Of a stretch of DNA of 64,000 nucleotides, positions 3,158 through 63,683 are shown piece after piece. Source of the DNA: Phallusia mammillata (lineage: Eukaryota). The stretch is from assembly GCA_965637545.1 (NCBI GenBank), contig OZ281494.1, forward strand, positions 1,054,001 through 1,118,000, written 5' to 3'. The translations under genes and the position numbers were made by a program. The first letter of the stretch is position 1, and each line of letters opens with the position of its first letter. Under the pieces are notes generated by a model. That model did no database searches. It saw nothing but the letters and a program-made list of their open reading frames with translations, and had not been told where the DNA came from.

Positions 3158-4022
3158 CGTTCCAATTTCCTTTGTTGTCTAGCCCTTTACAATTGCTTCC
3201 AATGGTCACATTCCACTTTTCCATTCCGCAGTTTTTCGAAGTCTCGCAGACGTAAATTGGTTCCATCGCGTTTTCAAAATTCCTAATCAATATAAGTCGG
3301 TCTAATTAATAGTGACAAGTTTGTAATTAACTGTTTTTCACTTTTTGTACAAGTCGAAATACCATAGATGTCCAAGGCATTTTGTACTTTTCCAAAAATC
3401 CACTTCAGCCGATTTATTTGAGTGTTTGCATCGTTCATATGTGACGGGGTCATAAAAAATATAAACCCGCTGCAAATCTGAAACAACGGTTTGTTACATG
3501 CAGTTAATTTACACCAGTAGTTTTTTTCTATCCAGTTTATTTTCATTTATTTATATAAGGGTTGTTTTAAAAATATCACAGTTTTTACCAACTTGTTCTG
3601 TATTTGTTTGTCATTTGTTGAGCGGGAGTTGTGTTGATCTGTGGGTCAGCAGGCATTGCAAGATTTCCACCCAGCAAAGAACATTTTTCCTGTGCAGTGT
3701 TTGCATCCACATTATCGTCAGATAATATCAACACAATGTCCTTCACTGCTTGAAAAGTGTTGTTGCAACGTAGGTAATAACTTATAGTTAACTTCAAATA
3801 TTTCGCCAAACAAGTCTTCTATCGCATTTAACACGCATTGACACACAACTTTTAGTTCAAATGTAGAACTGAATAAGCTCACCTAGGATATAAACCAAAC
3901 AAACAAACAAGCGGACAATAACACTTCTAATAGTAGCAGAGAAACTTACATTTAGTTTGTGCGGTCATAAGATGAACCATCATGGAAATAACCACAATCT
4001 TGCTGATACAAGCCACAATCAT
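3158..4022 (-). pseudogene. Copy A: 5' fragment of CTLD-FN3 receptor (signal peptide + CTLD exons 2-4); downstream exons absent from window
   Basis: Exon 3950-4022 [24 protein letters not shown]. Exon 3593-3769 ...[18 protein letters not shown]. Exon ~3343-3475. Exon 3158-~3282 EPIYVCE...WNVTIGSNC...GNWN. The exon-2 acceptor reads AC instead of AG (3771-3770). No exon-5 homologue in 1-3157. Confidence 0.7.
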
Positions 4023-4859
4023 CACGTTTGGTTTGTCACAATAAACAAATATGGTCAGTTTTTTCTTTACTTGTCGTTACCATAAACTTTTAAACGCACA
4101 GTTGTATATGCATACGTGTTGTCATTAGCTGCACCGACGAGACCTTATCTGTCTGCAGCTTTCAACTGCAAACGTTTTAAATTGTATTATTCATAGTTGC
4201 ACTAAATCGTATTGTTTTTCTTCTCAATCACAATTGTTTTTCAGCTGTACCAGGCCTTTACTGTAGCCTACTTAAGCGTTATGACTAATGTAAGTCCATC
4301 TACAATAATACCACGCTGTATTGGATAAATGTTTTCCAGACAATGTGCTGTACAAAGCAATATATATAACACATTTACGCGAATCAACTTTTCCATGCTT
4401 CCAGTGTTAACCTTACAACAAGTATGACTACACACTGTACGTCAACTCAACCGACATCTGCGCAAGGTGCTGATTTGTCACATCTTGTAATAACAATCAG
4501 TTTCCTGTGTGTGTTGAAAGGAACACCGTCTCTAAAAGAAAGAGAGCAGATTGGGAAAGCATATCACAACGCTGCCTGTATCAAATGCATTCATTGCTTT
4601 GATTTTCCCAGAACATTTTGTCCTCTATACACTGTCTGACAAAAATAAAAATTCCATTTTAATGACTAATTTTAATGACTTCGCGTGTCAATACTTTTGT
4701 TGTGTAGTTAAGGAACTGATATAAACAGTATGTAAGGATTTACGATTTTAGTTTGTCACTTGTATTCGAAAAAAATTGTGATGCGAACGCATGAAAGAAA
4801 CCAACGAAACTTGCACGAACACAATCACTTTCTAATGTTACCCTTGTCTTTTGGAGACT

Positions 4860-7490: not shown

Positions 7491-10400
7491 TTACTTGAAG
7501 TTTGAATAAGTGTCAAAATCGGACAGATATTGCATGACGACCGAGTAGCAGTATTTGTAGAGTTCCTGTAAAACCAGAACATTTAAAAATAAACACAGAA
7601 TTTGGTCTTGCTTGTTCAGAAGTCAGCAATATGAGACCAACTTCAGTATTCCTATTTTGTTAATTACATATACATCACCTTGTTGTCGACCATATTCGGT
7701 CTCATATCTCTCAGGTCTTTCACAGTTCGGAATACATCCACCCGCTTTTGTGCCTTCAAACTTTCGAGAATGTTTACCAGAGCGATGAAGGTCCCAGTTC
7801 TCGTTGATCCGTTACTGTAAATAAAGAAAGTTGATTGGATCCGGTTATTTTGAGAGTTCACATCAGACAAAACGCCTTTAGAAAAAAAAACGTTTCTGGA
7901 TAATGTCATACGTGTCTAAATTGATGTTGTTTGCAGGACTTTGTAATTTCGGGCATAAAGCAGTTTGACAATGATAAAGTCGTTTACTTAACCGAAATTA
8001 AATCTACTTTTCAGGTAGTTTGGTTTTAGAATTGATGCTGATATGCAGAAATAAATTACAATAGCAACTGCTTAATGAGGAAAACTAATTTGTTCGTTAC
8101 CTGCATCCCACCAACACACACTTGCAATTCTGTTTGGTCTTGAGTCGTTGCATTTCCTCGATAAGTTTGATGAAATCCATTTCTTTCGGAGGTCGTTCCA
8201 CGTCACTCCATACCTTGACTTGCAGAAGCATCAGTTGGTGGGCTGCCTAAAAGTACGGAATACAGAGTTTCAATCAGCATTGCTACCTAATACGGTATTT
8301 ACAGAGAGATTGTCGTATTTTACAACAAAACATAACAATTGGGTTGCTTACAAAAGCGTTGGTTGCAGACCAGACGTCGACAGTCATCAGATTTTGTTTG
8401 CTTTTATTTACGTCACATACAGAAACCGAAATGTCTTCATATTGTAAAGTTGCATCGATTGGAATCTGAAAACGATGTATGGTATATAATATAGAGTACG
8501 GCTATTATAGGAAAGTGCGAAACGTCAAATTTACTTGAATGCTGTCGTCCAAATCAACGACGAGTGAAGCTCCTCTCTCCACGATCATCTTCCAGAAGTT
8601 TTCTTCTTCTCCTGGAGCAGGATTTCTTGCTGCGATAAAAAATTCCGAAGAGCCATGTTCCTGCATGTTTATAAAGCAAAGAAATAGCATTTTTTTGAAA
8701 AGTTAACCGTATTGTATGTGAGAAAATGCATGTTAACGAGAAAATACATGTTAACTACCGTATTAAAAATAAGTAAGACACTTCGCGTAAAAGAGCTTGA
8801 ACCAATGTGAAAGCAAATTTTATTCTCGCCTGAATATATGAAGCATCCAACTGTTGAATGCTTTGGCTTTTATTGTCCCAAAGTTTGACCACCGTGTTCC
8901 TGTCTGTAAAATAAAGTTGGATGTAATTTGTTACCGGGTGAAATAATTTCAGTCACCTTTAAATATATTTATTCCGTATTTTTGCACTCGTAAAACGTTT
9001 GTTACTTAAAACACTGGGTTGCGTATCACTTGCTACACTGGTGCAAAATAAGGACGCCAGGTGGTACGCGGTGACGACGCGTAGCCTCAAAGTGGTACGC
9101 GACCACAGAAAGGTTAGGAATCACTGATCTACATATACATAAGCTTACATGTTCTCAGCTGTGGGTGATTTTCTTGCCATTCCTCGCCAAATCTCCACGA
9201 TGACAATACTTCAAATTCTTGTTCTTGCATTTTCTGGCTGTAACACAAGTTAAATACTGGGGTAACGTGTGAATTACAACAACAGCTCTTTTACGGTCTT
9301 GAATGACAGTCAAATTGCTGCAGTAGAAAAAAAAACCTTTTTAACGTTAAAAAAATAGAAAATGTGAATTGTGAACAGCAACACCAATTATGACGTACTA
9401 GCTTGTATAGATTTGGATCGAGTTAATGTACTACAACTGCTCACATTTCACTTGAAGTCATCGACTGTAGTTCGGTCACATCTTTATCTGTTTCCATTAA
9501 ACTCTCGCGCTCCATAAGTAGTTTGTAGACGTACATGTATTGATTCTGTAGAAAAACAGAATTAGTAAAAAAGATGTGATTAATTCGTTGCTAGACTTGG
9601 TCACAACATACACCCTCCACTAGAGAACCAAACGTGGATTGTAATTGAAAACCTATTTTTCTATTTGTTATTCGAGTCAGAATTTGTGCAACAACAGTTT
9701 ACCGCATTTTGAATCATGTCAATTCGATTCTCTCTCATTCTTAACACAGTTCGTGGCACATCAACTGTCCCTTTGTCGTCAAGTTCATGAAACAAAGAGT
9801 CCATCGCTATGTAAGTACCTGTGCGTCCCACTCCAGCACTGCATACAAACATATGCTTCATTTGAGTGATCAAATAAACATAGGGTTTGTCACGTCTTTA
9901 CCTGCAGTGCACGATGATTGGAGCATTTGCGTTTTGCAAATCATCGACCATGTTACGTAGGTGGATCATGTTGGATGTAGTTACTGGAATCCCATGATCG
10001 GGCCAAGTTGTAAACTGCAGCTGTGTTATGGTTCGTTGCTCCTAGAAAATGTAACAAGACTGTTGTGTGGAAAAAAATATTACAGTTTAATTTCGAATTT
10101 TAAACAGTAGTTATTGCAACATTGTTTTGTAATTTCTTCTGCGAAGAAACAAATTTGAATGCAACAAAAGGAAGGTTTAACCTGCAGTAAAAATTGAAAT
10201 TAAAATCAAGTATTGACGAAGTTACAAGTCATTATGCATTTAAAGTGTACATATAGAAGCCAAAATTGCCCAAACCCTTTGTTTGTTTTGTAGTTCACTC
10301 ACTGTTGTGGTGGATATGACAAACTGTCGTTGAACGATTCCACCGATGGTTGTTTCAAGTTGTGTTCGAACTGTGAAGTTTGGCAACAATTTCTTTTGAG

Positions 10401-13400
10401 ATTCAACGTCGGGCCAGTATTGTTCACACTTTGACTGCAGAAAAACAGGTTTTAAATAAAAACTGAAATCTCGAGTTAACTTTGTTTTAACAAAACATCG
10501 GTTGATAATTGGAAAGTGAGGCCTGCTATTTATGGCTGAATAGAGCTTGGATAAAGTGGTTTCAGTTTTGGTTGGAAATGAGTCAGCACACAAAGCTCTT
10601 TGTACGGAATAATTATTACCCAATCATAAATGTTTTGTGAAATAGGGGAATTTTTGTACTTTGTGACGAATAGATGTGGCGAGTAGAATGGTAAAGTGAC
10701 TAATAGCTATAAAATGTAGGCAGTATGAAAAGGTCGTCAAATACCGAACAAGAGTTTCGTCTACCATGTTGCATATTTAACAAATTTGTCATTTAACTGG
10801 TGTAATGGTAAACAAAATACTAGCTGTTTTTTTCAAGAACTTGTTTTTTGCTGACGTTTCGCCCACCAGAACGGTTTGGCTTCTTTAGAGCAATGATATA
10901 TTGCGAACACCAATTACCGTTCTGGTGGGCAAAACGTCAGCAAAAAACAAGTTCTTGAAAAAACAACCAATTATTGTTTAACATTACACCAGTTGAATGA
11001 CAAATTTGTTTGTTAAATATTATCTTTGTAACGAGTTTTGGCTGGTTAAGTTAGTAAGTAAACAAAGGCAACCTTTCCGTTTTCCACCAAGCCAGTAAGC
11101 ATTACGATGATGTTGGAGTTTTCCTGCCAAACCATCAACCAGAAATCGTTGATTGTCTCCTGCTTCGGACCCTGAGTGGCGATAAACTTCCTCTCGTTAT
11201 CGTAACCCGGTATATAAGCGGCGTTGATGTAATCGTTTACACCGCTTCCATGCAAAACCACTCGAGCATGATCGTCTATTGAATAAACACAAGTTATACA
11301 GGAAGTCAATTACACACGTATCAGTTACATTTTAATAAACACTCTCAGGGCAAAACTATCCATACATGACCACCTTTCATGCTTTCATTATGGTTTTAAT
11401 TGTTATCAGACCTTGGTGGCTCAATACTTATTTGTTTACTCTTATCGAAAATTTGCCATGTAAACAATTGATTTAAGTTATCGTAGCAAACCCTACACAA
11501 AAATTCCACTAAAACAGACTGAAATTAATAATATAAAATACAAGATAAAACGTACAATCATTGTGGTGGAAAATCAATGTATAAGTAATTATCTGACGCA
11601 GAAATGTTTGACTAGAAATGTAAACAAACACCGGTTTTTCTTGTGTGACGTAATAGTGCATGACCCACGTGAGTAACGAGTCTCATACCAGTTGTTACGT
11701 CATTACCTTTTAATGCCCGGTTCTCTTAGAGGACAGAAAAAGACGTTATGGGTTATTCCTTGGTCATTTTTACTACAATGAAATAGAAACTAAACAAAGG
11801 CAACTGTTTCGGATTTTATTCCGAGCTTGTTATGCACAAACCAGGATCTGTGCAACATTTAAAGTTCTTTGACACAATATTTTTGTATCAAGTTTAGTCG
11901 ATGTTGCTTACAACAAATTGTATCCAAACACAGAAGTTGAAGTTCTTTGTTGTGAAAATACTGTTTCTGCTTTTGGCTTGTAACTTTTTGGCTTTGATCC
12001 AAACATGTGAAGCTACTTTAAGTACATGTAACCCTCGTTTCAACTTTGTGTTTCAATACTTACAAGGGAAAATGTTCTTGTAGCGGTTTCTGACAGCATT
12101 TTGCGGCAACTGTGACACGTCCTTTGTTCTGTGGTTGTTTTTGCTTTGGTTTTCGACTTTCTGAAATGAAAGTTGGTACATCAAAAACAATAGAAGTAAA
12201 TGATTTCCCTTACTTGTGGCATTTGCTTCAAGAGTTAATTAATCGTGTTATGATAACTTGCACGTTGTGATTGTTTGTTAATTGAGGTTTTAACCCAGAA
12301 CTTGTTTTGATAAGGCATGATTAGAATCAAAAATTTTCATCTGAATAGGCCACAAAATACTAAATGACGTGATCACTACGTGGCATTTGACGTCACATCG
12401 GGTATAAATCCACGGTGTGTGTTGTATAAACAGTATTCAGACTTTCCCTTTACGCTTTTCCTTGAGACTTTTCCTTGCAGTTAACACAACAAACCTCAAA
12501 TTCGTTGGCAAAAAGAAATCCTGACTCAACATTCTTCTTGAACAACTTGAACAAGGTGTAATTCGACCTGGCTTCATGCGCTACGTTTTGGTAGACACTG
12601 TTTCCAACTTGAAAACCAGATTTTAAAGGCTTAGTCATTAACAATTGATACGACAACCTATTGATATACATAGGTGCTAAAACTTAAATAGAGGAAGGGC
12701 GAGTTTTTTGAAAGAAACCAATAAATGCTTTTTTTGTCGTGTTTTCTGAACATCTCATTAATGAAAAAGGTTTATTTCTGCGGACAAATTACCCTTCCAC
12801 ACCGTTTGGTACCTATGCCTACGTATGCACTTTTTGTAGTAACAGGTCCGCTATTTTACCCTCGTATCTACCTTGCGGTGACCCTAAAGATTGATGATTG
12901 GAATCTTCCACTTGTGGAGGTTGATCCTTGCTTGGCCTGTAAATACAATAGAATGTTAGTTTCAGTTCAGTATTTGAACAAAGGTACTTGCTAATATTTA
13001 GATATCCATTGCGAGTTAACTTAATTTATATAAGGTTAAATGACTAAGCGGGTTTCGCTTTCTCTTTTTGGACGAATGACTTACAACAAACGACCGTTAA
13101 CTTTCGAGGAAGTTAAAATCACGATGGTACTTTTGATAACAGTTTGTCATATCATTGACAAAAGCTACAATGCGAATTCGCCTTGAGCCAAATCAATTCA
13201 AAACAAACCTATGTCTTCGACGTATAAACATGACCCCCAGCCCAACAATGACAAGTACCAGAAGCAAAAGCCCGATCACCAGACCAGCAATCATTCCAAT
13301 ACTCGTTGCAGGATTGGACGTGTTGTCTCCCGGAAAACAGTTTGAGGGCGGATTACCCGGAGTTGTTACTGTTAGATTGGATATGACGTTTGCGTTGATT

Positions 13401-15372
13401 GAACCAGTGACAACTACTATAATCTGGAATATAAAATATGGTTGATTCATTATTTGCAGTCAACTACAGCATTGTGCAAATTTCAGCCTTATTGTAAAAT
13501 ATGCTTACCAGAATATCATACGATGTAGTGTGATTAAGACCTTCTATTAAAAGTGATTGAACCGAGTACGGAACGGAGATTGTTTGATTGAAACTCTGGA
13601 CTTGAATCTCAACCTGTATGTATTCGCATGTAAATGAAACATTAGTTGATTTCATTATTTGGTGGATTTAACGCAAATAATAAACACCAAAACTTGTATT
13701 TCGACCTGTGCTGTTAAATTGTTGTTGATGATAAATTGATCAAGTCCAGTCCAATTGACCAGCACAGTTGATGCGTTGCATGGAAATTTTGTCACAGAAG
13801 GTTTAACTAAAAGTGATTCCTGACGTTATAGCAAATCATAAAGAAAATTTGGTCACAAATTTGTCGAGTAGCTTTCCCATAAGACAAGAAAATCAGAAAC
13901 ATTGAAGAGCATTTAAAAAACATATGTATTTTTAATCCGTTTTGAAACGATGTGATTACTCACATCGTACTTGGCAAGCGTAGTAAGCCGGTTTCTTACT
14001 GCAGTTCATGCTTGACTGCACCCATCCGATCCCATAATGCAACGCTCCTTGTTGGCAAGTTGTAATCTTAGAAACGGGAAAGTTTGCCGGAGATCCGTCG
14101 CTCCAATACCAACCATTCAATGACGTGTTGTAGCGAGCTCCAATAAAAACTTTGATATCTAAAAATTATTTGTGTTTTTGCATCCAAACCGACGGTTTGT
14201 ATTTTTGTGGATTTATTCAAACACTCACTTGGTGCCAGAAATGATCCTCTGTACACCGAGAAGTTTCCGAACGTTTCATTCACACTGCGCAACTTGTCCG
14301 AATTTATGGCGTCACTTTTGTAGTTGTATATTTTCTTTTGTAGTTTTTGAGTTTTGGAAAACAATGAAAATCTTACTTCCCATCCTGAAAGTTATAAGGC
14401 ACGGTTTTGCCGCTATTTCCTATAAATTCTTTCATTAACTAGCTGTGTGGCACAAACCATTCCAATTTCCTGTTTCGTCATTGAATCTACAGCTTGTTCC
14501 AATGGTTACACCCCACTTGTCTTTGCCCTGGTTTACCCAACCCGGGGCATTGCAGAAGTAAATTTCCACCATCGTGTTTTCATATTTGCTGAAAAAACAT
14601 AAAGCTTTGAAAGAAAAATCACAAGTAAACAAATTTTGTTACTATCTTGTTTTCACCTTTTATACAAATCGAAATACCACAAATGTCCAAGAGATTTTGT
14701 ACTTTTCCAAAAATCCATTTCAGCCGAATGTTTTGAGTATTTGCATCGTTCGTATTTTTTAGATTGATCATAAAAAATATAAACCCGCTGCAAATCTGAA
14801 ACAAAGTTTTGTTTAAACATTTCAAAAAATATATACTGGCTTCAAATCTAAAAAAAATATGCTGAGTGCATTCAACATCTAATTTATAACACTATCAAGT
14901 TTAGAACTGTTTGTTTTCCACAACACAAACCTGTTGTGTATTTGTCTGTCATGAGTTGAGTGAGAGTTGTGTTGATCTGTGGGTCATCAGTCATTGCAAG
15001 ATTTCCACCCAGCAAAGAACATTTCTCCTGTGCAGTGTTTGCATCCACAAGATCGTCAGATAATATCAACACACGGTCTTTCACTGCTTGCATGTTTTTG
15101 TTAAAACCTGGCAAACAACATGTTGTTAAGTGCAAATATTTCGCCAAATAAGTTGTTAAACGCAATTAATTGCCAAAAAAAGCAAAGTTAAATACACCTA
15201 ATAACAAATATTAACAGTTTTGTTGATAGTTGACTCACCAGGGTTAAAAACCAAGCAATCAGATATTAACTTTTTTGATAGTAAACGTGACACACTTACG
15301 TTTAATTTGTGCGGTTATTACATGAACCATCATGGAAATAACCACAACCTTGCTGATACAAGCCACAATCAT
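7491..15372 (-). CDS. Copy B: receptor-type protein tyrosine phosphatase, SP-CTLDx2-FN3x1-TM-PTP D1-PTP D2 (about 24 exons, apparently intact)
   Basis: SP 15300-15372. CTLD exons 14931-15107, ~14657-14793, ~14459-14588, ~14230-14385, ~13963-14158 (GWYWSDG...C...YYAC). FN3 ~13706-13807, ~13508-13612. TM exon ~13208-13422 ([24 protein letters not shown]). D1 motifs [45 protein letters not shown]2 ends TYSNFK* with TAA at 7491-7493. Intron phases are consistent throughout. Confidence 0.9.
10765..11017. mobile_element. Older, degenerate copy of the same palindromic PLE remnant in a copy-B intron
   Basis: Inverted arms TTTAACAAATTTGTCATTTAACTGGTGTAATG...CATTACACCAGTTGAATGACAAATTTG, with GCTGACGTTTCGCCCACCAG / CTGGTGGGCAAAACGTCAGC. 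Hammerhead core is mutated. Confidence 0.7.
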
Positions 15373-16807: not shown

Positions 16808-16980
16808 CTTTGTGTTTCAATACTTACAAGGGAAAATATTCTTCTATCGGTTTCTCACAGCATTTTCAGGCAAGTGTGACACGTCCCTTGTTCTGGTTGT
16901 GTTTGGTTTGTTTTTCGATTTTCCGAATTTAATGTGGTAAATCACTAGCAATAGAAGTAAGTGTTTGTGGCATTTGCATT
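16808..16980 (-). pseudogene. Orphan pseudo-exon of PTP D1 (NRY exon) between copies B and C
   Basis: Close copy of 12045-12230 including intron flanks. Reads AGA AAC CGA TAG AAG AAT ATT TTC CCT, so the NRY Tyr is a stop (16844-16846). No neighbouring PTP exons. Confidence 0.85.
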
Positions 16981-43081: not shown

Positions 43082-43083
43082 TT

Positions 43084-49900: not shown

Positions 49901-50343
49901 TTTTTTGCAATGGAGTTAAACATGAGCATTTTTCAACATAGGGTAACTACTCATTTACAGCTATTCACGGTTTTTAGTGCCGTTGAAGTATATCTGTCTG
50001 CTCACAAACGGAATAAACGTAAGTACAAACCTGTCTTATATTTGTCTGTCATGAGTTGAGTGAGAGTTGTGTTGATCTGTGGGTCATCAGTCATTGCAAG
50101 ATTTCCACCCAGCAAACAACATTTCTCCTGTGCAGTGTTTGCATCCACAAGATCGTCAGATAATATCAAGACACTGTCCTTCACGGCGTTCAGTGTCTTT
50201 GTGCAACCTGTCAATAAGTTTTACATGTTTTCTTTGTATTTCTTTTCAAAATATAGTTGGTTTCGATGGAACTTACTGTTGTGTTGCGTGAGTGAGCAGT
50301 GAACAAGAAACAACAACACCACAACCTTGTGACCAGAGATCAT
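46952..50343 (-). CDS. Copy F: PTP-less receptor, SP-CTLDx2-FN3x2-TM-short dual-tyrosine tail (apparently intact)
   Basis: SP 50277-50343 MISGHKVVVLLFLVHCSLTQHN. All checked CTLD and FN3 exons are open. TM exon 47437-47630. Exon 47177-47244 RTSNKKASGKQATKEQFPHQSNE. Terminal exon 46952-47040 ANSDDKTTDQHEYENYKSTNENPTYETIT*. Confidence 0.85.
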
Positions 50344-50712
50344 GACTAACATTGACAGACCAAAATATCAATAAATGACTTTTAGGTTTTAAATTAAGCA
50401 ATCTATTCTTCAATCATAAAGCTTTTTGTTAGGCACACTTTGATTATAATTTTACAAATAAATACAAATTAAAAAAGTTTAAACGCTGTCTTGCTTCTGA
50501 ACTTGAAACACTGAAAAGCGTTGCTCAATTTGCACTGACAGAAGAAACGAAAGTCCTTGTGTTTCTTAAGAATCGTCCGACACTTGGGTGTTTACCAACT
50601 CGTTAAAGCGCTTTTATGTTTTACTGCAAACATTGGCACCTTCACCTTTATTGAAGTCTTAAAGCATTGTCAAGTCAAGTGATTTTTTGGCATAGGCACT
50701 TTATGATAACAG

Positions 50713-50874
50713 TGTAGCGCTGTTTATTTGCGCGAGTTCAAATATCGAATGACACAAGACAGAAAGGGCGAGACAAAACACGTTGCAAATAGAAAAAGGC
50801 ACGTGACGTATTGTGCGGTTCGGTTACGCATGACTGGTTAACGCAGTTGGGGAAAACACCCAGTTGTCGCCACA
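50713..50874 (-). repeat. 3' LTR
   Basis: Direct repeat of 54668-54829. Confidence 0.97.
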
Positions 50875-53800
50875 CAGCCCCCCCCCAGAATCGTACAATG
50901 CGCGACAATAATGATTGCAATGGTTGACGTCTGGTCGCATTCTCGCGAAGGCATTGCATGCGTTTTTCTTCGGGGGCCGTCCTCTTCTTGGAGGTTGTGC
51001 AACCTGAACAGGCATAGTTAAATGGACCTGTGCTGGTTTGAGTCTGTCAACCGAAACGGTTTGTGGTCGCCCACCCAAATCCACTATGAAAGACTTTGCG
51101 CCGGTCTCAATGACTTTGTAGGGACCCTCATATGGCGGCGTTAATGGCGGACGATGGGAATCTTTTCTGATAAACACAAACTTTGTTGTTGACAAATTAG
51201 CTGGAATAGCTGACTTTTTAAGACCATGGCGGGACATACGGATCGGAGCCTGCTTTAAAATGGTGTCTTCTAGAGTAGGGAGAAGTGTTGCTAAATCCGA
51301 CGAAGGATTCTTCAGTGGAACGATGTCTCCCGGTATCCGTATCGGCGCACCATATACAAGCTGAGCGGACGATGCTTGTAAATCTTCTTTAGGTATGGTT
51401 CTAATTCCTAGAAGTACCCATGGTAACTCATCAAGCCAATTTGAACTGCTCATACGGGCCATGAGAGCACTTTTTAAGTGTCTATGAAATCGTTCCACGA
51501 GGCCGTTTGCTTGCGCGTGGAAAGCCGTGGTTTTATGAAGCTTAATGCCTAAAAGCTGATTCATCATTGACCACAGTTCTGAAGTAAATTGCGCCCCACG
51601 ATCTGAAGAAATATCTGCTGGAATGCCAAATCGGGCAATCCAGTTGCTAATGAAGGCTCTAGCACATGTCATTGTCGTTTGATCCTTCATCGGTATGGCT
51701 TCTGGCCATCGAGTAACACGGTCGACAATTGTAAGGAGATAGGTATATCCTTGTGATTGCGGCAGCGGTCCTACTATATCTATATTCAAGTGACTGAAAC
51801 GTGTCGCTGTGGGTGGATATTCAGCCAATGGAGCGCGAATGTGTTGCTGAATTTTCGCCCTTTGACACGACAAGCATTGCTTTGCCCATGTACTAACATC
51901 TCTTCGCATTCCATGCCACACAAACTTTGATGCAACTAAGTTGCTTGTGGCCCGTATGGAGGGGTGTGACAGTCCGTGGATTGCATGAAAAACGCGTTTT
52001 CGCCAAGCTTGAGGAACTAATGGTCGAGGATTCCTGCCAGAAATATCACAGAGAATAATAGTTTCTTCGTGGTCGTAAGCAATATCTTTGAACTTCAGCT
52101 TAGTAATAGAGGTGCGGTAAGCTTGCATCTCGTCATGAGCTTCTTGTTGGGCTGCAGCCAATAACTTGTAATCAAAATTAACACAGTCAGAAACACTTGC
52201 GAGCAAGGACCTGGAGAGTGCATCAGCAACAGGATTGTTTTTACCATCGATATGTTTAATATCAGTGGTAAACTCTGAAACGTATGAAAGGTGTCGTTGC
52301 TGACGTGCTGACCACGGATCTGTAGCTTTATTAATGGCAAATGTGAGTGGTTTATGGTCCGTGTACGCTGTGAAAGATCTTCCTTCCAAAAAATATTTAA
52401 AATGGCGGACAGCCAAATACAATGCCAACAGCTCGCGGTCAAAGGTGCTGTACTTAAGCTCAGCTGGCCGTAGGCATTTGCTAAAAAACGCCAAAGGTCT
52501 CCATTGACTGTCGATTTGCTGCTCCAAAACTGCGCCAACAGCAAACTGGGAAGCGTCCACAGTTAAAGCGGTTTTTGCCTCGAGCCCTGGGTGGTTAAGT
52601 AGCGTAGCATTTGCAAGTGCGTCTTTAGCTTCATCAAAAGCGGTCTGAAGGCTTTCTGTCCACGTTAAATCCTTTGGCTTATTAGACAGAGCTTGTATAT
52701 GGGTAACATTATGGTAGCAGCTGATGGTATGAATCGATGATAAAAATTTATCATACCACTAAATTGCTGTAAACCTGCAATTGTTGTTGGGCGTTTGAAT
52801 CTTCGTATTGCCTCCACTTTTTCCGGCAAGGGCTTGGCCCCATGGACATTAACTTGATGTCCAAGAAAATCAATTTGTGTCTGCCCGAACCTGCACTTCG
52901 CAGTGTTAATAATAAGACCATGGCTGTCTAATCTTTTGAACAGTTGTCGCAGATGGTCAATATGCTCACTTGAAGTTTTGCTTGCCACAAGAATATCGTC
53001 AAGATAAACAAAAGCAAAAGGTAAATTTGTGCAAACGGAATCCATTAAACGCTGGAAAGCTTGTGCTGCGTTTTTTAATCCAAATGGCATACGCAAGAAT
53101 TCGAACAAACCGAATGGGGTAATTACAGCAGTCTTTGGTACATCAACTGGCGCAACAGGCACTTGGTGATAACCACGAACCAAGTCTATTTTTGAAAAAA
53201 TTGTGGCACCTGTTAAATGCGCAGAAAAGTCCTGGATGTGGGGAATAGAATATCGATCCGCTTCAGTGATCGCGTTCAAACGCCTGTAGTCACCACAGGG
53301 CCTCCAACCGCCGGATGCTTTGGGCACCATGTGTAAAGGCGATGACCAGGGACTCGAAGAACGCCGCACGATTCCTAGGTCAAGCAAATGTTGAAATTCC
53401 TGTTTGGCAATCTTCAATTTTTCAGGGGGCAGACGCCTTGCCCTAGCATGGACTGGTGGCCCATGTGTGATAATAAAGTGCTCTACCTGATGCTTGGGTT
53501 GTGAGTCAGAAAAGCTACTTTTGGTCAGATTGGGGAATTCTGAAAGTAGTTTGGTGTAAGTTGGTTGTGCTGCAAAAGACATTATGTCACGCGGTGAATT
53601 CGCTGTCTTAGAAGAATTCACATTATCTGCAGAATTCGGATGCCACAGTCGATGGCGCTTGAAGTCGACAAGCAACCCATTTGCATGCAAAAAATCGATG
53701 CCCAGCAGAGGCCGAGATACATCGGCTATTACAAATTTCCAAGCAAATCTACCAATGGAAAGATGTAAAGTTAAAACTTTGAAGCCGTACGTACGTATAA

Positions 53801-53996
53801 TAGTTCCATTGGCTGCTTTAAGTGAAACACCAGGTCTGTTTGAGCGACGATCCCGTCCAGTTGCAGGTAGCACACTTACTTCAGCACCACTGTCGATTAA
53901 GAAGTTGGCTCCTGTGTTGCAGTCTGACACGAAAAAGAGTCGGTTTTGCCTGCCGGCCGTCGCAGCCAATCTGGGCGGCCGGCTGGCTCGTTTCCC
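50824..53996 (-). pseudogene. pol: Gypsy Pol (PR-RT-RNaseH-IN), broken by a 1-nt deletion near 52695
   Basis: [26 protein letters not shown]. RNase H DASQFAVG. IN HGLSH...C..CQR, DIVGPL, SDRG, ERFH. The frame switches at TAC AA|GCT CTG TCT AAT AAG between the 464-aa and 578-aa ORFs. Confidence 0.93.
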
Positions 53997-54631
53997 TGAC
54001 AAATACATGGTCGGCGGCAACGACGTGCCTTGGGCCCAAAGCGCTGATGAAAAAAACAAAGGCCGTCTCCACGTGGATCAAAAGCAGACTTGTTGCTTTG
54101 ACTCTGCACTTTTGAAACAATAAAATTTGGGTCGCGCCTTGCTTGCCATAAAACATCTGCTCTCTTGGCGAAACTTCGAAGGTCGTCGATGTTCTCTTTT
54201 GCCAAAATAATTCTGATGTCTTCAGGCATTTGTTGTAAAAATAGATGCTCAAAAAGGAAACACGGCTTGTGATCGCCTAACAAAGCCAGCATTTCATCCA
54301 TTAGGGCTGAAGGTTTTCGGTCTCCTATCAAATCATTTATCAAATCAGGCAAATTTAAAAGACGAGCGGCTCTCTCTTGCTTTGAAAGAGAATATGTGTC
54401 CAACAGTTGCTGCTTAAGCGCTTCATATTTTCCTTCTGCAGGCGGATGTTCCAACAAATCAATTAGACGTAGTGCTGCGGTTTGATCCAATGCAGAAACC
54501 ACATAATAAAACTTTGTTTTGTCGTCAATTATCTTCCGCAAAGCAAACTGTGCTTCTGCTTGATTAAACCAAACACGCGGTTGCGCGGTCCAAAATGTCG
54601 GCAACTTTAAAGACACTGCATGCTCTTCCAT
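53897..54631 (-). CDS. gag: Gypsy Gag
   Basis: SLKLPTFW...WFNQAEAQF...TKFYYVV and [18 protein letters not shown] (CHCC). Confidence 0.95.
53990..53996 (-). promoter_or_regulatory. -1 ribosomal frameshift slippery heptamer G GGA AAC at the gag/pol overlap
   Basis: Gag reads CAG GGA AAC GAG while Pol reads TCA GGG AAA CGA (-1 frame). A GC-rich stretch follows. Confidence 0.8.
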
Positions 54632-54667
54632 CCTGAGAAATTCGTTCTCAGGTTACGGGGTCACCAC

Positions 54668-54829
54668 TGTAGCGCTGTTTATTTGCGCGAGTTCAAATAT
54701 CGAATGACACAAGACAGAAAGGGCGAGACAAAACACGTTGCAAATAGAAAATAGCACGTGACGTATTGTGCGGTTCGGTTACGCATGACTGGTTAACGCA
54801 GTTGGGGAAAACACCCAGTTGTCGCCACA
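54668..54829 (-). repeat. 5' LTR
   Basis: Direct repeat of 50713-50874, followed on the minus strand by the PBS. Confidence 0.97.
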
Positions 54830-55369
54830 ACAGTTCCGTTTTTGTTAAACAGATACGGAAAAGGCAAGGACACCGAAAGAATCCATATATTTCCGAGTCA
54901 AGTGTTGGTTAAATTTGGTTTTCTGGGTATGTCGTACCGTAGAATCGCAACCGACCGCACGATCCTGGCGGGGTACGTCCGGTTGCATAAGACGGTAGTT
55001 GAACTCGCGAGTTTTGTTGGTCCAATGAAACCCGCCTTAACAGGAAACACCACCTCGAAACGTTTCCTGTGATCCTGTAAACAGGCCTGGGTGCACGAGG
55101 ACATCCTTTAGCACGATGAAAATGTTGCCATCGAACATATATTCCCCAGGGTTTCTAGAATCGACGGCGAGGATCTAGTTCATTGTTATAATACAAACGA
55201 GTAAAAAGAATAAAAGTGAAAGAACGCTAAGATAAAACTAAAACAGACATAAAAAACAGAAAAGGTAGCTAAAACTAGGGTAATTTTTGGTATAGAAGAT
55301 CAAGCTGTATTATATGTATTCTGGTATAAGCGATGGCACAGAGGTTTTTTAGTTATTGAGTGGTCATAT

Positions 55370-56282: not shown

Positions 56283-59200
56283 TCATTGGAAGTTTGAATA
56301 AGTGTCGAAATCAGACAGATATTGCATGACGACCGAGTAGCAGTATTTGTACAGTTCCTGTCAAAAAAAACTTTATTTAAAGAGATGTCTACTTTTCTCG
56401 CCTTAGCCCAAAGAAAAACGTTACCTTATTGTCGACCATATTCGGCCTCATATCTCTCAGGTCTTTTACAGTTCGGAATACATCCACCCGCTTTTGTGCC
56501 TTCAAACGTTCGAGAATGTTCACCAAAGCGATAAAGGTTCCAGTTCTTGTCGATCCGTTGCTGGGAACATATCAATATTATTTTGTCTTGAGAACATGTT
56601 TATGATTTTTAGAATTTTGTTGGCAAATTGGCTTGATATCAATTTGTTGTAGCAGATCTCCTTGTTTTGTGTGTAAAATGCAAACAATACATTACCTGCA
56701 GACAACCAGCACATATTGACAATTCTGTTTGGCCTTTAGCCGTTGCATTTCCTCGATAATTTTGATGAAATCCATTTCTTTCGGGGGCCGTTCCACGTCA
56801 TTCCATCCCTTGACTTGCAGAAGCATCAATTGAGTATCAGCCTGAAAACAATTAAAGCTAAATTTCATTATACACGTTATAAAACTGGTGTTTAAATGTT
56901 AAAAGTCGGTATGTTGATCCGAGCAGTTACGCAAATTTTGAAATAATGCTATGTTGTATGGTATTTTTGGGTTGTTTTTTGATAGATTATGTACTGATTT
57001 ATTTTTCATACACTAGACCACAACAAACTTTGTAGCTTAGAAGCAATGCTGTTTTAAAGTTTTCAACTTACAAAAGCGTTGGTTGTTGACCAAACGTCAA
57101 CAGTTGTCAGATTGTGGACATTGCTTTCATTTACATCACATACAGAAACCGAAATATCTTCGTATTGTAAAGCTGCATTCACTGGAATCTAAAAACAATT
57201 TTATGTTTTAATACGTAAAGAAATTGTGATTTGAAAAAATGACAGTCTTACATCAATGCTATTCTCCAAATCAATGACAACCATAGCTTTTTTCTCCACA
57301 ACCATCTTCCAGAAATTTTCTTTTTCTCCAGCAGCAGGATTTTTTGCAGCGATGAAACATTCTGAAGATCCTTGTTCCTGTATTTGAAACTGGATTAAAG
57401 TAGACTAAAAAAATCAGCTAATAACAATGTTTTGTCACAAGTGTAAAGATCGTTTACATTCTCACTTGAATGTACATCATTAAAACTTGTTGACATTGTA
57501 CCTGAACGGTTTGCTACTGATCTATGAGTGTAAAAGTATTAATACAATACATACGCCACCAATTGTAATTGAAACCGTGATGTGATTTGAAACATTGTAT
57601 TTTGTAATATCACCTGAATATACGAGGCATCCAGTTGCTGTATAATCTCAAGTTTTTTGTTCCAAATTTTTACTGCCGTGTTCTTATCTGAACACAATAT
57701 TTCATGTGTCTAAGGTCAAACATTATTTTGAGAATAAACTTACATGTTCTCAGCTGTGGGTGATTTTCCTGCCATTCCTCGCCATATCGCCACATTGACA
57801 ATGTTTCAAATTCTTGCTCTTGCATCTTTGTGCTGCAAAACAAAAGCTTAATGCGCGCTCACGTGTGAAAGCTATTAGCGCTTCAAACAATAATCTCAAC
57901 AATGTGACAACTACCAATGTGGTACACCAACAAAATGCTTGCAGGGAATTAAAATTGTATACTAGAAATGAGCCATGTGTTGTGATTAATGACAAATGTG
58001 TTACATTTCACTTGAGGTCATCGATTGTAGTTCTGTCACATCTTTATCTGTTTCAATTAAATTCTCACGCTCCATGAGAAGTTTGTAGACGTACATGTAT
58101 TGTTTCTGAAGAAAAACAAATTTAGAAAAAAAACACATGATTGGCGTTAGTCTTAGTTGCATCATATGGCCCCCTATAGAGCAGTTAACATGTGGAATTT
58201 GTGCCGAATTCCTTCTTGTCGTTTTTTTATAGTTAAGTTAACATTTGCAGCACATTACCGAGTTTTGAATCATGTCTGTTCGGTTTTCTCTCATTCTTAA
58301 CACAGTTTGTGGAACATCAACTGTTCCTTTGTCGTCAAGTTCATGAAACAAAGTGTCCATTGCTATGTAAGTACCTGTGCGTCCCACTCCAGCACTGCAT
58401 TTAAACATTGGGTTTACTGATTGGTCAAAATAACACAGGGTTTGTCAAGTCTTTACCTGCAGTGCACAATGATTGGAGCATTTGTGTTTTGCAAATCATT
58501 GACCATGTTACGTAGGTGGATCATGTTGGATGTAGTTACTGGAATCCCATGATCGGGCCAAGTTGTAAACTGCAACTGTGTTATGAAACGTTGCTCCTGA
58601 TAACGAAAACACGTAATTGCATCAATTATTACGTCATTTTTACTGAAAAAGGAACGTGTCACCCACACGCCGTGCAATGTGTGAGTCAAGAAAACATTAG
58701 GCAACGAAATTTTAGGAAGACAAATACTAGTTTGTTGGTCATTTACGTTTCATGGTTACATTTTCGTTATTTACACAAACCCTGGTTGTGGATAATTCGA
58801 ACTGTCGATATGTGATTCCTCCGAGACTTGTCTCATGTTGTGTTCGAACTTCCAGATTCGACGACAATTTGATTTTGGAGTCCATATCAGGCCAATATTT
58901 TTCACACTTTGTCTGCAGTTAAAATATATTTTGTTATTTCTAGACCAGTGGTTCTCAAGCCGTTTCAGGCCATGGACCACCGACGCAGCAAAAACAATAT
59001 CGTGGACCATTACATTTTTAAGCAAGATTGAAGTAGGCCTATAAAATAATCATGTTTGCAACCTATTTACAATAACATAAATGTTATTGTCCACGATCAC
59101 TGAGTCAAAACTTATTCACTAAATAAATAATTAGGAAGCAAATGCTTTTGACTCAAATCCAGTAGACACTGAAAAGAAGTGAGATTAAATAACTGACAAC

Positions 59201-62200
59201 AAACACGCTGACCGTTTTTCAAAATACAATATGCGAAAAACAGTTTTTCACCAAGCTTATTGGATGTCCTGTGGACCACCAAAAAGTCTTCATGAACCTC
59301 TAGTGGCCCAAGGAACACCAGTTAAGAAACACTGCTTTAGACAACAAATAACTCGTTTTCTATTCACTCCTTGGGAGAAATGATTTGGCCAATCAAAGAG
59401 TAGTTGCCACAAAAAAAACTCAACTCTTCCTTTTTCCACTAAGCCAGTGAGCATGACGATGATGTTGGAGTTTTTCTGCCAAACCATCAACCAGAAATCG
59501 TTGATTGTCTCCTTCTTCGGACCCTGAGTGGCGATGAACTTCCTCTCGTTATCGTAACCCGGTATATAAGCGGCGTTGATGTAATCGTTTCCACCGCTTC
59601 CTTGCAAAACTACTCGGGCATGATCGTCTATTGAATAAACGCCATTAATACTGAGATTTTATCACACGTGCAGAAGTGTTACAACAAATATCCACTGTAG
59701 CCAATAGTGTAATATTTACCTAATACTAGTAAAATAGCAAAACCAACTATCTTAATAAAAATAATAAAAATAAAACAATACTGAGGATTTGAATTATGTT
59801 ATGTGGCGGAAACAAATGTGCAACAACTATGCCAGTAATAAATCAAGGGATTTACAACACAACAAAGTGACTTTTCCCGAAACTTTGATGAATAGGAAAA
59901 ATCAACCGTTTAATACTCACAAGGAAAAATATTCTTATAGCGGTTTCTCACAGCATTTTGTGGCAATTGTGACACGTCCCTTGTTCTCTGGTTGTTTTTG
60001 CTTTGGTTTTCGACTTCCTGAAAAATGGTTAATACGGAGTTTTTAAGGTTTGGTTGTTTTCTTCTCGAATTGCTTGGACGTAAATGTTTATTATAACTTA
60101 GTTTTCTCTAACCTTAAATTCGTTGACAAATAGAAGTCCTGACTCAACATTTTTCTTGAACACCTCATACAATTTGGTGACTCTGCAGTTTTTTGAGGGG
60201 ACAACAGAAGGAGATAGGTTTTCGTATATCACGGGTCCTGTTAAAACCATGATGTATATTTCAGCATGGCTCTATGGTATTGTTTTCATCAATTTTGTGA
60301 AACTCTATTAGTTAATTAGCAATTTTCGATAGTAAAAGTTACCTGCGGGTGACATTTGCGATGAAAATTCCACATGTGAAGGCGGATCTTTATTATTTCT
60401 GCAAAAACAGAACAGCTTTGAGTTAAACGTTTTTAGTTGGTCATGTTTCTATTTAATTGTACGTGAGTGTTTAATCTTTGCTTTAATAAAAAAAACAAGT
60501 TTGAATATTTATTCGTGATCTAAATTTCAGTCGGTGGTAAAAATCTGGTTACCGGGCATCATGAGCAGAAGATTTTGTCCAAAATGTTTTGATCAAAAAT
60601 ATCAAAAATATATTTATGTTTTGTGAGCCAAATCAGTTAGTGACAAACCTGTTTCGACGTTTAATCATAACCACCAGCACAGCAATGACAAGTACCAGAA
60701 GCAACAGTCCGATCACCAGACCAGCAATCATTCCAACACTACTCGCAGGATTTGTTCCAGGATAACAGTTTGGAGGTGGATTTCCCAGAGTTGTTACTGT
60801 CAGATTGGATGTGATGTTTGTGTTGATTGAACCAGTGACTATGGATGTAATCTTTGATACAAAAATATACTTTCAGTTTAATTTTCAACAAAACGATTTT
60901 TAAGATTTTTTTCCTTTTATTTTTGCTTGGTCAAATATGAAAGAGAACAAGTCCTTACCAATATTTCATACAAAGTAGAGTGAAGGAGATCTTCTATCAT
61001 AGTTGATTTATTGCAATAAGGAACAGAGATTGTTTGATTCAAACCCTGGCTTTCAATTTCAACCTGTATGTAATTTGGATGCAATGATGAATATAGTTTT
61101 TTTTTCAGCAAAATTGTCACACTTTCAGGTTCGTTTATCAAACAATGAAGACTCAAAAAACAACAACAAAGAGTTTCCAATAGACCTGCGCTAACAGATC
61201 GTTGTTGATGAGAAATTGATCAAGTCCAGTCCACCTGACAAGCACATTTGAAGCGTTGCATGGAAATGTCTCTGCAGTCGAGTTTACTGGAATAAAAAAT
61301 TTACTGTTTCTGTTTTACAAAACTTGCAGTAATTCAACAAATATTGCAGGCGTTTTAAATATCGTGTTTGTTAATCACTTGTCTGCATTTCATATGTCTG
61401 TTTAATTTTACGAAAAATGTTACCTTCAGGATAGCAGCTTTGCGGGGGATTACCCGGAGTTGTTACTGTCACATTAGATGTGATGTTTGTGTTGATTGAT
61501 CCAGTGACAATTACTGTGACCTGAAAGACATCAAACACGTAACTAGTCTTGTAGGTTTCACCTTAAATGTGTTAAATCAACTCTCAATGGAAAAAAATTC
61601 ACCTGAATCTCGTACAACGTTGAGTGACTGAGATCTTCTATTAAGGCCGAATCGCTAAAGTACGGAACTGAAGTTGATTGGTTTAAACCCTCGATGTTTA
61701 TCTCAACCTGCATGTAGTTTGGTTACAAATATTTGTTTGAGAAACACACAAACTTGCTGTCAACCTGCGCCACGAGCTCGTTGTTGTTGATGAATTGATC
61801 AAGTCCAGTCCAACTGACAAGCACAGTTGAAGCGTTGCATGGAAATGTCACTGCAGTCGTAATTACTGCAATACATAATAATAAGCCACTGATTATGGAT
61901 TGCAAAGTTAGAGAAACACTTTGCCTGTTTCTTACGAATTGGGGTCGCTAAATACTTAAAAAATTGCATCAGTGTTTACCTTCAGGGTAACAACTTGAAG
62001 GGGGATTACCCGGTGTTGTTACTGTTGCATTGGATGTGATGTTTGTGTTGATTGAACCAGTAACAATCACTATGACCTGAAATCACAAACATACCTTTTG
62101 TTTATGTACATGTTACGTTCCGGTTTCCGGAAAAGTTTATTAACGTTATTTTTCTGCTAAAACAGTGATTACTCAATTAACAAAAACACAGGCGACAGGC

Positions 62201-63683
62201 TCTTACCTCAATGACATACGAAGTAGAGTGAGTGAGATCTTGTATTGTTGTGGAGTAGTCGAAATATGGAACAGAGACTGTTTGATTCAAACCGTCCACT
62301 TGAATTTCAACCTGCATGTATATTGACATCAAATAACTGTTTAGCCACATACAAACTTGGTTTATACCTGAGCTGTTAGATTGTTGTTGTTGATGAATTG
62401 ATCAAGTCCAGTCCAACTGACAAGCACAGTTGAAGCGTTGCATGGAAAAGTCTCGGCAGTCGTGTTTACTGTAATGCAAATAGGAAAGAAACATTGTGTC
62501 AGGTTTTTAAAGTTTGTGTTTGCTAACATAGGTTGCTCGCTTCTTCGGAATTGTTCTTGCGAAACACTGGTATGAACTATGATTATTTTCCATACCTTCA
62601 GTGCAACACTAAACCAAATTACGTTTGGTTTCTGCGACAATTTTTACCTTTAGGGTAACAACTTTGGGGGGGATTGCCCGGAGTTGTTACTGTCAGATTG
62701 GATGTGATGTTTGTGTTGATTGAACCAGTGATAATTACTGTGACCTGAAATACTCAAATTACTTAAATGCATTCCGATAAAAAAGTAGTTGATTGTAAAT
62801 AAAAGGTGTCCTGCAACTACTTCGATTAACTCAAATAGGAAAAAAGTGTTTTCACCTGAATTTCATAGAATGTTGAATACTCTAGATCTTCTATTAAAGT
62901 CGAATTGTCAGAATATGGAACAGAGATTGTCTCACTTAAACTCTCGACTTGAATCACAACCTGTTTTAGTTTCGTTTTAAATGGTGGTTTAACAAACACA
63001 AACTCGGTTTAAACCTGCGCTGTTAGATTGTTTTCGTTGATGAATTGATCAAGTCCAGTCCAGCTGACAAGTACAGTTGAAGCGTTGCATGAAAATGTCT
63101 CTGCAGTCGCGTTTACTACAAAAAGGTGTTGTTAAAATTTAAAATTCAAATTTCACAGGTGACTTGTTTGCTTACATGGAGGATAGCAACTTGATGGGGG
63201 ATTTCCATACGTTGTTACTGATGTGGAAGTTGAGACGTTGGAGTTTAAACATCCAGTGAGCATTGTAGTAACCTGTTTTTATGTTTTCTAGTTAAGCTAT
63301 CTTTGTTTAAATATATTTGAAACTGTTTTCGTATCCGTTATTTCCTGGGTAAATTAGAAAACTACGTTGTAGTCCAATAACTTGATTCATATTTAAGCAT
63401 ACTATTTACAGGTTAGAACATTTTGTGCAAATATAATAGTTCAATAGCACTTGTCGAAGCGTAATCATGTTTTGTACAAAAATTCTGGCTCTGATTTTTT
63501 TTGTTATTGAACTGACCATTCATACTCCCCAATTAAATTTCAATAAATTGTGTTCAAATACTTTCAAACACACTTCACCTCAAAACTATATTGTGTTGCA
63601 AAACTTAGGTTTCCAATGGTTGTTGATAGATTTGCATACGGTGCCATAATTCTTCGGTTGAGCTCCAAAACATAAATCTCAAC
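56283..63683 (-). CDS. Copy G (5'-partial): receptor PTP with at least 5 FN3 repeats-TM-D1-D2; lectin exons lie beyond the right edge
   Basis: FN3 triplets at ~63683-63176, ~63115-62648, ~62470-61980, ~61860-61425, and ~61290-60650 (with [26 protein letters not shown]). D1 [27 protein letters not shown]. Ends TYSNFQ* at 56283-56285. Confidence 0.9.
58946..59334. mobile_element. Charlie-type hAT MITE in a copy-G PTP intron
   Basis: CAGTGGTTCTCAA ... TTAAGAAACACTG termini. Flanks TTCTAGAC and CTTTAGAC (6/8 match; nTCTAGAn-type target). Confidence 0.8.

Follow-up and report, generated by a model that had tools for sequence, protein, structure and literature searches.

Tandem array of a putative lectin-like receptor phosphatase family with a phosphatase-less member in Phallusia mammillata

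A stretch of 64,000 nucleotides (nt) from Phallusia mammillata (assembly GCA_965637545.1, contig OZ281494.1, positions 1,054,001 to 1,118,000), here called the window, contains seven paralogous copies of a receptor gene (A to G), all coding on the minus strand. All coordinates given below are window positions. The DNA is AT-rich and eukaryotic (about 36% GC), and the copies are 66-89% identical at the DNA level, as determined by comparison of six-frame open reading frames (ORFs) and self-blastn. The array is a birth-and-death tandem cluster that includes pseudogenes. Our favoured explanation, which we hold to be reasonably probable, is that the copies belong to a lineage-expanded family of type I receptors. 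Its ancestral form would have been a receptor-type protein tyrosine phosphatase (RPTP) resembling the R4 class, carrying two C-type lectin-like domains (CTLDs) on a stalk of FN3 domains, and the short-tailed members found in the array would be derived from it.

Exon models were built from DNA alignments of the paralogs, in which the AG/GT sites are conserved, with a phase-aware junction finder and with tblastn using curated exon peptides. The models follow a common plan. A signal-peptide exon ending in phase 1 is followed by three exons for the first lectin-like domain (L1a, L1b and L1c; CTLD1), two for the second (L2a and L2b; CTLD2) and an FN3 cassette of three exons (phases 1-0-0-1) repeated n times, the final copy fused to the transmembrane (TM) segment. 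One or two juxtamembrane exons lie 3′ of the TM, and then either about 13 exons encoding tandem protein tyrosine phosphatase (PTP) domains (D1 and D2) or a single short terminal exon. In every copy from A to F the first exon is signal-peptide-like and has a gtaagt donor. All 13 cassettes tested have an open frame and encode 99-100 amino acids each. Every TM exon ends in phase 2, which the downstream juxtamembrane exons accept. The seven copies are as follows.

3158-4022, minus strand: gene A, a 5′ fragment in which only the signal peptide (4022-3950) and the three exons of CTLD1 are present.
7491-15372, minus strand: gene B, an intact lectin-like/FN3 receptor phosphatase with one FN3 cassette; signal peptide 15372-15300, CTLD1 15107-14458, CTLD2 14384-13964, cassette/TM 13806-13209, stop 7493-7491.
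18670-27597, minus strand: gene C, an intact lectin-like/FN3 receptor phosphatase with three FN3 cassettes; signal peptide 27597-27528, TM exon 23932-23721, D1 and D2, stop 18672-18670.
28860-32750, minus strand: gene D, of the short-tail type; open from the signal peptide (32750-32681) to exon T1 (29144-29077), 549 amino acids.
34923-43081, minus strand: gene E, a phosphatase-type pseudogene; signal peptide 43081-43000, two cassettes, PTP exons, stop 34925-34923.
46955-50352, minus strand: gene F, an intact phosphatase-less receptor of 14 exons and 575 amino acids; signal peptide 50352-50277, CTLD1 50207-50031, 49889-49757 and 49671-49547, CTLD2 49231-49067 and 48985-48791, two FN3 cassettes 48628-47725, FNc/TM 47630-47437, T1 47244-47177, T2 47040-46955.
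56283-63683, minus strand: gene G, of the phosphatase type with at least five FN3 cassettes; TM exon 60851-60649, juxtamembrane exon, D1 and D2, stop 56285-56283.

Genes B and C have an open frame from signal peptide through stop. The canonical L1a acceptor of A is mutated from CAG to TAC, and no CTLD2, FN3 or TM exon was found in the 3.1 kb below this gene, where the DNA is repeat-rich. E is a dead gene: one of its D1 exons is interrupted by an in-frame TAG at 37296-37294, L2a has lost 1 nt near 41667, and several junctions fail. The lectin exons of G lie beyond the window edge; its visible part chains cleanly. An earlier note on this DNA, made from the sequence alone, had described a tandem cluster of seven related copies with pseudogenes among them, a dead E included, tandem PTP domains in B, C and G, and a varying number of FN3 domains, and all of this is borne out by the models, in which B, C, D, E, F and G have 1, 3, 2, 2, 2 and at least 5 FN3 cassettes, respectively. 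Its statement that all seven share one ectodomain plan holds for B to F, the only copies in which the full plan lies within the window.

The phosphatase part resembles the R4 class. Exons of both D1 and D2 match Pfam PF00102 (E 1e-11 to 1e-26), and in the spliced models of B, C and G two tandem PTP domains follow a single TM. D1 of these three genes contains a WPD loop (TTWPDHGIP) and the HC(X)5R signature and is predicted from these motifs to be catalytically competent; D2 keeps C(X)5R, but has WSD in place of WPD. The C-terminus reads ...DFDTYSNFK (...DFDTYSNFQ in G) compared with DIFSDYANFK in PTP-epsilon, in agreement with DYANFK as a hallmark of R4, so that the Y-x-N-F docking tyrosine, the equivalent of Tyr789 of PTP-alpha, is present. 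The catalytic exons have PTP-epsilon and 'PTPRA'-type proteins as their best-named relatives. D1 of gene C is 45-46% identical over 275 amino acids to proteins of Styela clava with both Lectin_C and PTP domains, and 36-43% identical to amphioxus, crinoid and vertebrate relatives. The best matches in a HMMER protein search with a D1 exon were 55-58% identical, and none of the 150 shared the ectodomain. By these matches the catalytic part is R4 (PTP-alpha/epsilon)-like, an assignment confined to that part because the ectodomain contains folded modules. PTP-alpha and PTP-epsilon (PTPRA, PTPRE) have the same tandem D1/D2 and a C-terminal Y-x-N-F-K with the tyrosine at position -5, but R4 ectodomains are short and without folded domains (PMC10815196), whereas those described here have two CTLD-like domains and one to at least five FN3 domains and are encoded in large arrays. 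A review of RPTP ectodomains mentions no lectin domain as part of them (PMC10815196).

The lectin-like character of the head was assessed by profile comparison. Aligned by hhalign with 61 canonical CTLDs, a set gathered from proteins returned by searches, CTLD2 scored a probability of 92.6% (P 4.6e-7) and CTLD1 81.9% (P 1.1e-5), in agreement with the CTLD assignment of the earlier note. Nine of ten spliced lectin-like domains scored above all 200 shuffles in hmmsearch. Profiles of the exon alignments had KLRG1 and Dectin-1 (L2b/CTLD2) and SP-A (L1a/CTLD1) as top PDB matches in the correct register, at marginal E values of 0.03-0.06 for the best match per search, and in a language-model atlas the nearest named clusters were Lectin_C in 97 of 100 cases for L2b and in at least 90 of 100 for L1a. 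CTLD2 has a WIGL-like LIGA, a W-x-W-S-D-G motif and three cysteines. None of the calcium- and sugar-binding residues EPN, QPD or WND was found in CTLD2, which reads ...GWEQSS..., so sugar binding is not implied and 'lectin-like' is the safer term. On this sequence evidence two divergent CTLD-like domains are present and the name is justified. The FN3 cassette matched 290 FN3 domains of RPTPs with an hhalign probability of 79.5% (P 1.5e-5) in the correct strand register.

Gene F has a complete ORF with canonical GT/AG sites at all junctions and contains no phosphatase exon. Its cytoplasmic tail of 57 amino acids (T1 and T2, 46955-47244) contains HEYENY, a YxN motif, and NPTYETI, in which NPxY overlaps YxxI; it ends in HEYENY-x8-YETIT and a stop, the last tyrosine standing at position -5 from the C-terminus. 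The remnant of the D tail reads HEYENI...VYEIPT before its stop. The two tails have otherwise diverged, and both keep HEYEN and a tyrosine at -5. The two-tyrosine tail that the earlier note had attributed to both genes is thus intact in F; in D no usable in-frame AG acceptor was found for the T2 exon (28916-28860), and stops occur in all three frames of a microsatellite located at the acceptor site.

28916-28860, minus strand: tail remnant of D, DVEHEYENIEDGHVYEIPT followed by a stop.
28921-28945, minus strand: (GAATT)5 microsatellite directly upstream of the D tail exon.

D has also lost a conserved cysteine of CTLD2 (MNCSGE to ITSSGE) and is probably decaying. In the last intron of D, at 29020-28951, a strong acceptor (ttttgtttcag) would give an alternative in-frame ending ...PIIIVYFRLMRDK followed by a stop; this ending includes I-V-Y-F-R-L, which fits the pattern of an ITIM (immunoreceptor tyrosine-based inhibitory motif) and may well be a chance occurrence.

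Three RNA-type runs, of unstated tissue, and one DNA-like run were aligned over 45700-50650. Contigs from the three RNA runs span six F introns, from the signal peptide to the first FN3 exon, with GT-AG joints exactly as modelled (50205|50275, 49889|50031, 49671|49757, 49231|49547, 48985|49067 and 48628|48791). The 5′ half of F is therefore transcribed and correctly spliced. One contig of RNA run X17 departs from F at 48552, within the first FNa exon, and its next 186 nt read like another member of the family (...KNNNLSAVVE); it either stems from a transcribed paralog located beyond the window or is chimeric.

The transcription of F bears on the possibility that the short-tail copies are by-products of array turnover, truncated and heading for loss without a function of their own. 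The lost tail acceptor and cysteine of D, the fragment A, the dead E and a stray PTP exon at 16829-16903 would all fit such a process, as would the presence of a long terminal repeat (LTR) retrotransposon that reaches, at its lower end (50704), to about 350 bp upstream of the ATG of F. Against it, F retains its 575-residue frame over 14 exons with canonical sites and is spliced correctly over six introns, D and F share HEYEN and the terminal tyrosine despite the divergence of their tails, and T2 reaches about six times the baseline depth in the DNA-like run at 95% likeness or more, suggesting further copies. We consider this explanation unlikely.

It is also conceivable that D and F are not separate genes and that their TM exons are joined by splicing to the gene that follows downstream (C or E), at its juxtamembrane and PTP exons, which would offer one phosphatase additional ectodomains to choose from. 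The phase 2 ends of the TM exons would allow this, the tail exon of D is unusable, and D and C are neighbours only 1.3 kb apart. F, however, has in-frame terminal exons with a good acceptor and donor, the gene downstream of F is the dead E, and such splicing would have to jump over the 6-8 kb that hold the complete ectodomain of the neighbouring gene. No contig showed a joint of this kind, but RNA coverage of the tail region was zero. Read-through of this kind is very unlikely. No T2-like alternative terminal exon was found inside the PTP-type genes by motif or blastn, and a homology search with the TM exon of F returned nothing, hence no transcript-derived protein that shows how the tail is spliced.

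Neither tail is a canonical immunoreceptor tyrosine-based activation motif (ITAM): F reads YENY-x8-YETI, with Y for L/I at +3 of the first motif, and D reads YENI-x5-YEIP. No charged residue occurs in the TM of F. Three lectin-headed RPTPs of Styela clava offer a comparison, since they end after D2 with similar motif pairs (NLYETI..NLYENI, NLYEYI..SLYENI and NLYANF..NLYANI), the first motif of each pair sitting at the position of Tyr789 of PTP-alpha. As these pairs stand on a phosphatase chain, the motifs would work with the enzyme and not against it. To judge from motifs of four to five residues, the tail of D and F looks like a docking or sorting part without its enzyme and not like an opposite, ITAM-type module. 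F could alternatively be an endocytic lectin-like receptor of the mannose-receptor or LDLR type, in which NPTY (NPxY) and YETI (YxxI) would serve as clathrin sorting signals. Both motifs are directly readable in the tail, and NPxY and Yxx-hydrophobic sequences are established internalisation signals that are common in CTLD receptors. The second motif of D (YEIP), however, departs from the YxxI pattern, in the conserved HEYEN the motif is YxN, of the type bound by the Grb2 SH2 domain, and the position of the Styela motifs behind a phosphatase makes a docking role like that of PTP-alpha Tyr789 more natural. A purely endocytic F is accordingly a doubtful reading.

The Styela proteins (LOC120336018, LOC120336141 and LOC120336013; XP_039259559.1, XP_077976615.1 and paralogs), all annotated as 'uncharacterized protein', are the closest known likeness. 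They combine a tunicate lectin-type ectodomain with tandem PTP domains (Pfam Lectin_C three times and Y_phosphatase twice), provide the closest catalytic match and have two C-terminal tyrosine motifs of the YETI/YENI type. In LOC120336018 and LOC120336141 Pfam identifies Ig, three Lectin_C and two PTP domains, and in LOC120336013 fn3 as well as Lectin_C, Ig and PTP. Unlike the domains described here, the Styela CTLDs are canonical, with strong Pfam matches and, in the first CTLD of LOC120336018, EPN; they are followed by EGF and Ig domains in much longer proteins (1634-2184 amino acids), and they show no detectable direct sequence similarity to the CTLDs of the window. A direct hmmsearch of the window CTLD profiles against the Styela proteins was not significant, only profile-profile comparison with the broader CTLD set being successful, and a homology search with a Styela CTLD as query found nothing. 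The tyrosine pair also differs in its placement, after D2 on the phosphatase chain in Styela and on a phosphatase-less paralog here. 'PTPRA' proteins of Branchiostoma lanceolatum (CAH1242919.1 and CAH1243821.1) likewise join PTP-alpha/epsilon-like catalysis to lineage-specific FN3 ectodomains, but these contain fibrinogen, Ig, EGF, PAN and Sushi domains and no CTLDs.

Lectin-headed R4-like receptor phosphatases are thus, as predicted proteins, a tunicate theme already present in public annotation. To our knowledge they are absent from the vertebrate R1-R8 scheme. Lectin-RPTPs of the sea urchin are said to appear in a 2006 survey of S. purpuratus phosphatases and may represent the same combination in an invertebrate deuterostome; a full-text search for the name found nothing in the literature covered. 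The earlier note did not recognise the family as a described one. No paper on lectin-headed RPTPs turned up in literature searches covering ascidians, Ciona and sea urchin, which agrees with that view, but the architecture itself is not new to the databases, where it exists under the 'uncharacterized protein' entries.

From two kinds of tail in one array the earlier note had moved to paired recognition receptors comparable to KIR, Ly49 and SIRP, in which PTP and two-tyrosine members would bind the same or similar ligands and signal oppositely, the phosphatase replacing the recruitment of SHP by ITIMs. The two tail kinds and the clustered birth-and-death family with its pseudogenes stand. The adjacent genes C (PTP) and D (short tail) are, moreover, the closest pair in the lectin region (76.5% identity), share the same 7-residue deletion in L1c and have similar 5′ flanks; the most divergent exon is located where CTLDs bind ligand, and F is transcribed. 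The step to inhibitory and activating partners is weakened by several points. R4 phosphatases are known mainly as activators of Src-family kinases, so it does not follow that a phosphatase means inhibition. The tails are not canonical ITAMs and the TM of F is uncharged, the Styela relatives combine the same types of motif with a phosphatase, and F is the one intact short-tail gene in the window. Lectin-region identity across the copies, at 65-77%, may be too low for classical paired receptors, which share near-identical ectodomains. Given what is known of the R4 class, the anatomy of the motifs, the Styela comparison and the single intact short-tail gene, the logic of an inhibitory phosphatase and an activating two-tyrosine tail is unsupported, and we regard this reading as possible but rather unlikely. 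Tunicates do use receptor pairs of this general kind in allorecognition, where Ig receptors act with ITIM/hemITAM partners (PMC12582321). KIR, Ly49, LILR and SIRP of vertebrates and Fester/FcoR of Botryllus (PMC12582321) likewise form clusters with changing copy number, pseudogenes and differing cytoplasmic tyrosine motifs. Those systems, however, use ITIM, ITAM, hemITAM or charged-TM adaptors under Ig or NK-type CTLD heads, whereas here one class bears its own R4-type phosphatase and the other has non-canonical YxN and NPxY/YxxI motifs.

The exons of the ectodomain have evolved at markedly different rates. Medians per exon, obtained from Nei-Gojobori estimates of synonymous divergence (dS) and of the ratio omega, are given below.

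L1a: amino-acid identity 83%, dS 0.14, omega 0.6.
L1b: amino-acid identity 65%, dS 0.51, omega 0.36.
L1c: amino-acid identity 49%, dS about 1.0, omega about 0.5.
L2a: amino-acid identity 53.5%, dS 0.6, omega 0.45.
L2b: amino-acid identity 82%, dS 0.34, omega 0.26.

The mosaicism proposed in the earlier note is supported by the low dS of L1a against 0.34-1.0 in the other exons, and L1a looks homogenised or constrained at the nucleotide level. L1c is the most divergent exon, as the hypervariable lectin exon of the earlier note would have it; judged by its position, it codes for the loop region used by canonical CTLDs in ligand binding. Since its omega of about 0.5 is accompanied by a high dS, the variability of L1c is old or unhomogenised divergence and not demonstrated positive selection.

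Sequencing depth points to a family extending beyond the window. Introns and intergenic DNA are covered evenly in the DNA-like run, at a depth of about 400-500. Its summed depth, which is not a copy number, rises to about 185,000 in L1a, about 108,000 in the cassette/TM exon and 25,000-32,000 in L2b, with 50016-50181 (L1a) at about 400 times and 47526-47691 (cassette/TM) at about 240 times the local baseline. The high-depth contigs carry the consensus letter of the paralogs and not that of F. Together with the low dS of L1a, these peaks suggest a much larger family with one nearly invariant exon, L1a. As a bolder proposal, which we hold to be improbable, the germline family would be very large, possibly tens to hundreds of genes spread over several arrays, and would constitute a recognition system in which PTP and docking-tail members share heads and compete for Src/Grb2-type machinery. 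If true, recognition of self/non-self or of microbes would have been built on an R4 phosphatase in place of ITIM/SHP, and would have evolved independently of the paired receptors of vertebrates and of Fester/FcoR in Botryllus.

The explanation that we favour, a lineage-expanded family with an R4-like ancestor, can be set out as follows. The ancestral receptor would have carried an R4-like tandem PTP under two divergent CTLD-like domains on a stalk of one to at least five FN3 cassettes, whose number may change by unequal exchange because the cassettes are phase-symmetric. The exons appear to evolve as a mosaic in which L1a stays nearly identical among copies and L1c diverges far more. The lectin-like head would bind an extracellular ligand, not necessarily a sugar, and the active D1 together with the C-terminal YSNF docking tyrosine would tune phosphotyrosine signalling of the Src-family/Grb2 type, as PTP-alpha does. 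D and F may have arisen by loss of the PTP exons; what they retain is the TM, the first of the juxtamembrane exons and a short terminal exon whose tyrosines stand in YxN and NPxY/YxxI motifs. F would most likely be a catalytically silent sister that binds similar ligands and offers only tyrosines for docking or sorting; its role would be that of a competitor, a scaffold or an internalising receptor, and an ITAM-type activator appears less likely.

Several observations weigh against this explanation. Single ectodomain exons, pieces too short for the purpose, matched nothing in Pfam; CTLD1 is without the usual last cysteine, and its C-terminal half is unassigned. The likeness of the tail to Styela extends over only four to five residues and could be convergent. 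A derivation of T2 from the last PTP exon or the juxtamembrane exon with YENL found no support, the DNA similarity being not above shuffled controls, and the similarity between the T2 exons of F and D was likewise not above shuffled controls. The 3′ half and tail of F are covered by no RNA contig of the three runs, so that the splicing of the tail is predicted. Contig depth, as stated above, does not count genes, and the whole of the proposed function is inferred: what the head binds, with which partners the receptor signals and what the tail does. Directly observed are the gene structures, domains and lesions, together with the transcription and splicing of the 5′ half of F.

Lectin-headed RPTPs are otherwise found only as 'uncharacterized' predictions in Styela clava, and here the architecture is expanded in arrays with a variable stalk, a fast-diverging putative ligand-binding exon, exon-wise homogenisation and at least one transcribed phosphatase-less sister. 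The family offers a testable case of how invertebrate chordates may diversify surface recognition and couple it to phosphotyrosine signalling, and a natural experiment on the part played by C-terminal docking tyrosines of the PTP-alpha type once the enzyme is removed.

The integrity of the array bears on all of the above. An artefact of collapsed or duplicated haplotypes, a possibility raised in the earlier note, might be suspected from the single N gap inside the array and from non-canonical joints between cassette exons in the DNA-like run. The copies, however, lie 11-34% apart in DNA and differ in cassette number, lesions and tails, and contigs of the independent DNA-like run match the unique parts of F at even depth with few or no differences. 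With DNA identities of 66-89% the copies are genuine diverged duplicates and not assembly copies, and an artefact is exceedingly improbable. The N gap starts 37 nt past the TGA stop of E (34925-34923), and on both sides it is bordered by sequence collinear with the DNA 3′ of gene C (18630 and 17609-17850); because it lies in the 3′ untranslated region (UTR) of E, no reading frame crosses it. One joint in a contig of the DNA-like run, from 47637 to 48552, links the first FNa exon with the beginning of the FNc/TM exon across 914 skipped nt; its ends are not splice sites (AC..CG), its depth is about single-copy, and it could reflect a variant in cassette number, a paralog or an artefact of the graph caused by cassette repetition.

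Other features of the window are the following.

34747-34885, no strand: N gap in the 3′ UTR of E.
16829-16903, minus strand: stray relic of a PTP D1 first exon between C and B (tblastn 76% identity to exon P1a of B, E 1.5e-9).
50704-54908, minus strand: Ty3/Gypsy-type LTR retrotransposon between G and F, identified by Pfam domains and repeated ends.

The repeated ends of the retrotransposon are found at about 50704-51046 and 54611-54908, and its Pfam domains are RVT_1, RT_RNaseH, Integrase_H2C2, rve and DUF7041 (gag-like). The pol region is broken into separate ORFs, and the GC content of the element is 42-45% compared with 36% in the surroundings. An Rfam scan of the window found no RNA family. 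Just below A, at 1324-1995, a 66-bp tandem repeat (3.4 copies, 96% matches) occurs with interstitial TTAGGG-like repeats, which may mark the rearrangement that took away the 3′ part of A. The juxtamembrane exon of C encodes VTYENL (23100-23083), which fits both an ITIM-like I/V-x-Y-x-x-L pattern and YxN. G has the letters VIYENL at 60226-60209, but the homologous acceptor is out of frame there and a shorter exon starting at 60182 is predicted, and B and E have YQNV at the corresponding position; the structure of the juxtamembrane exon therefore varies among the paralogs.

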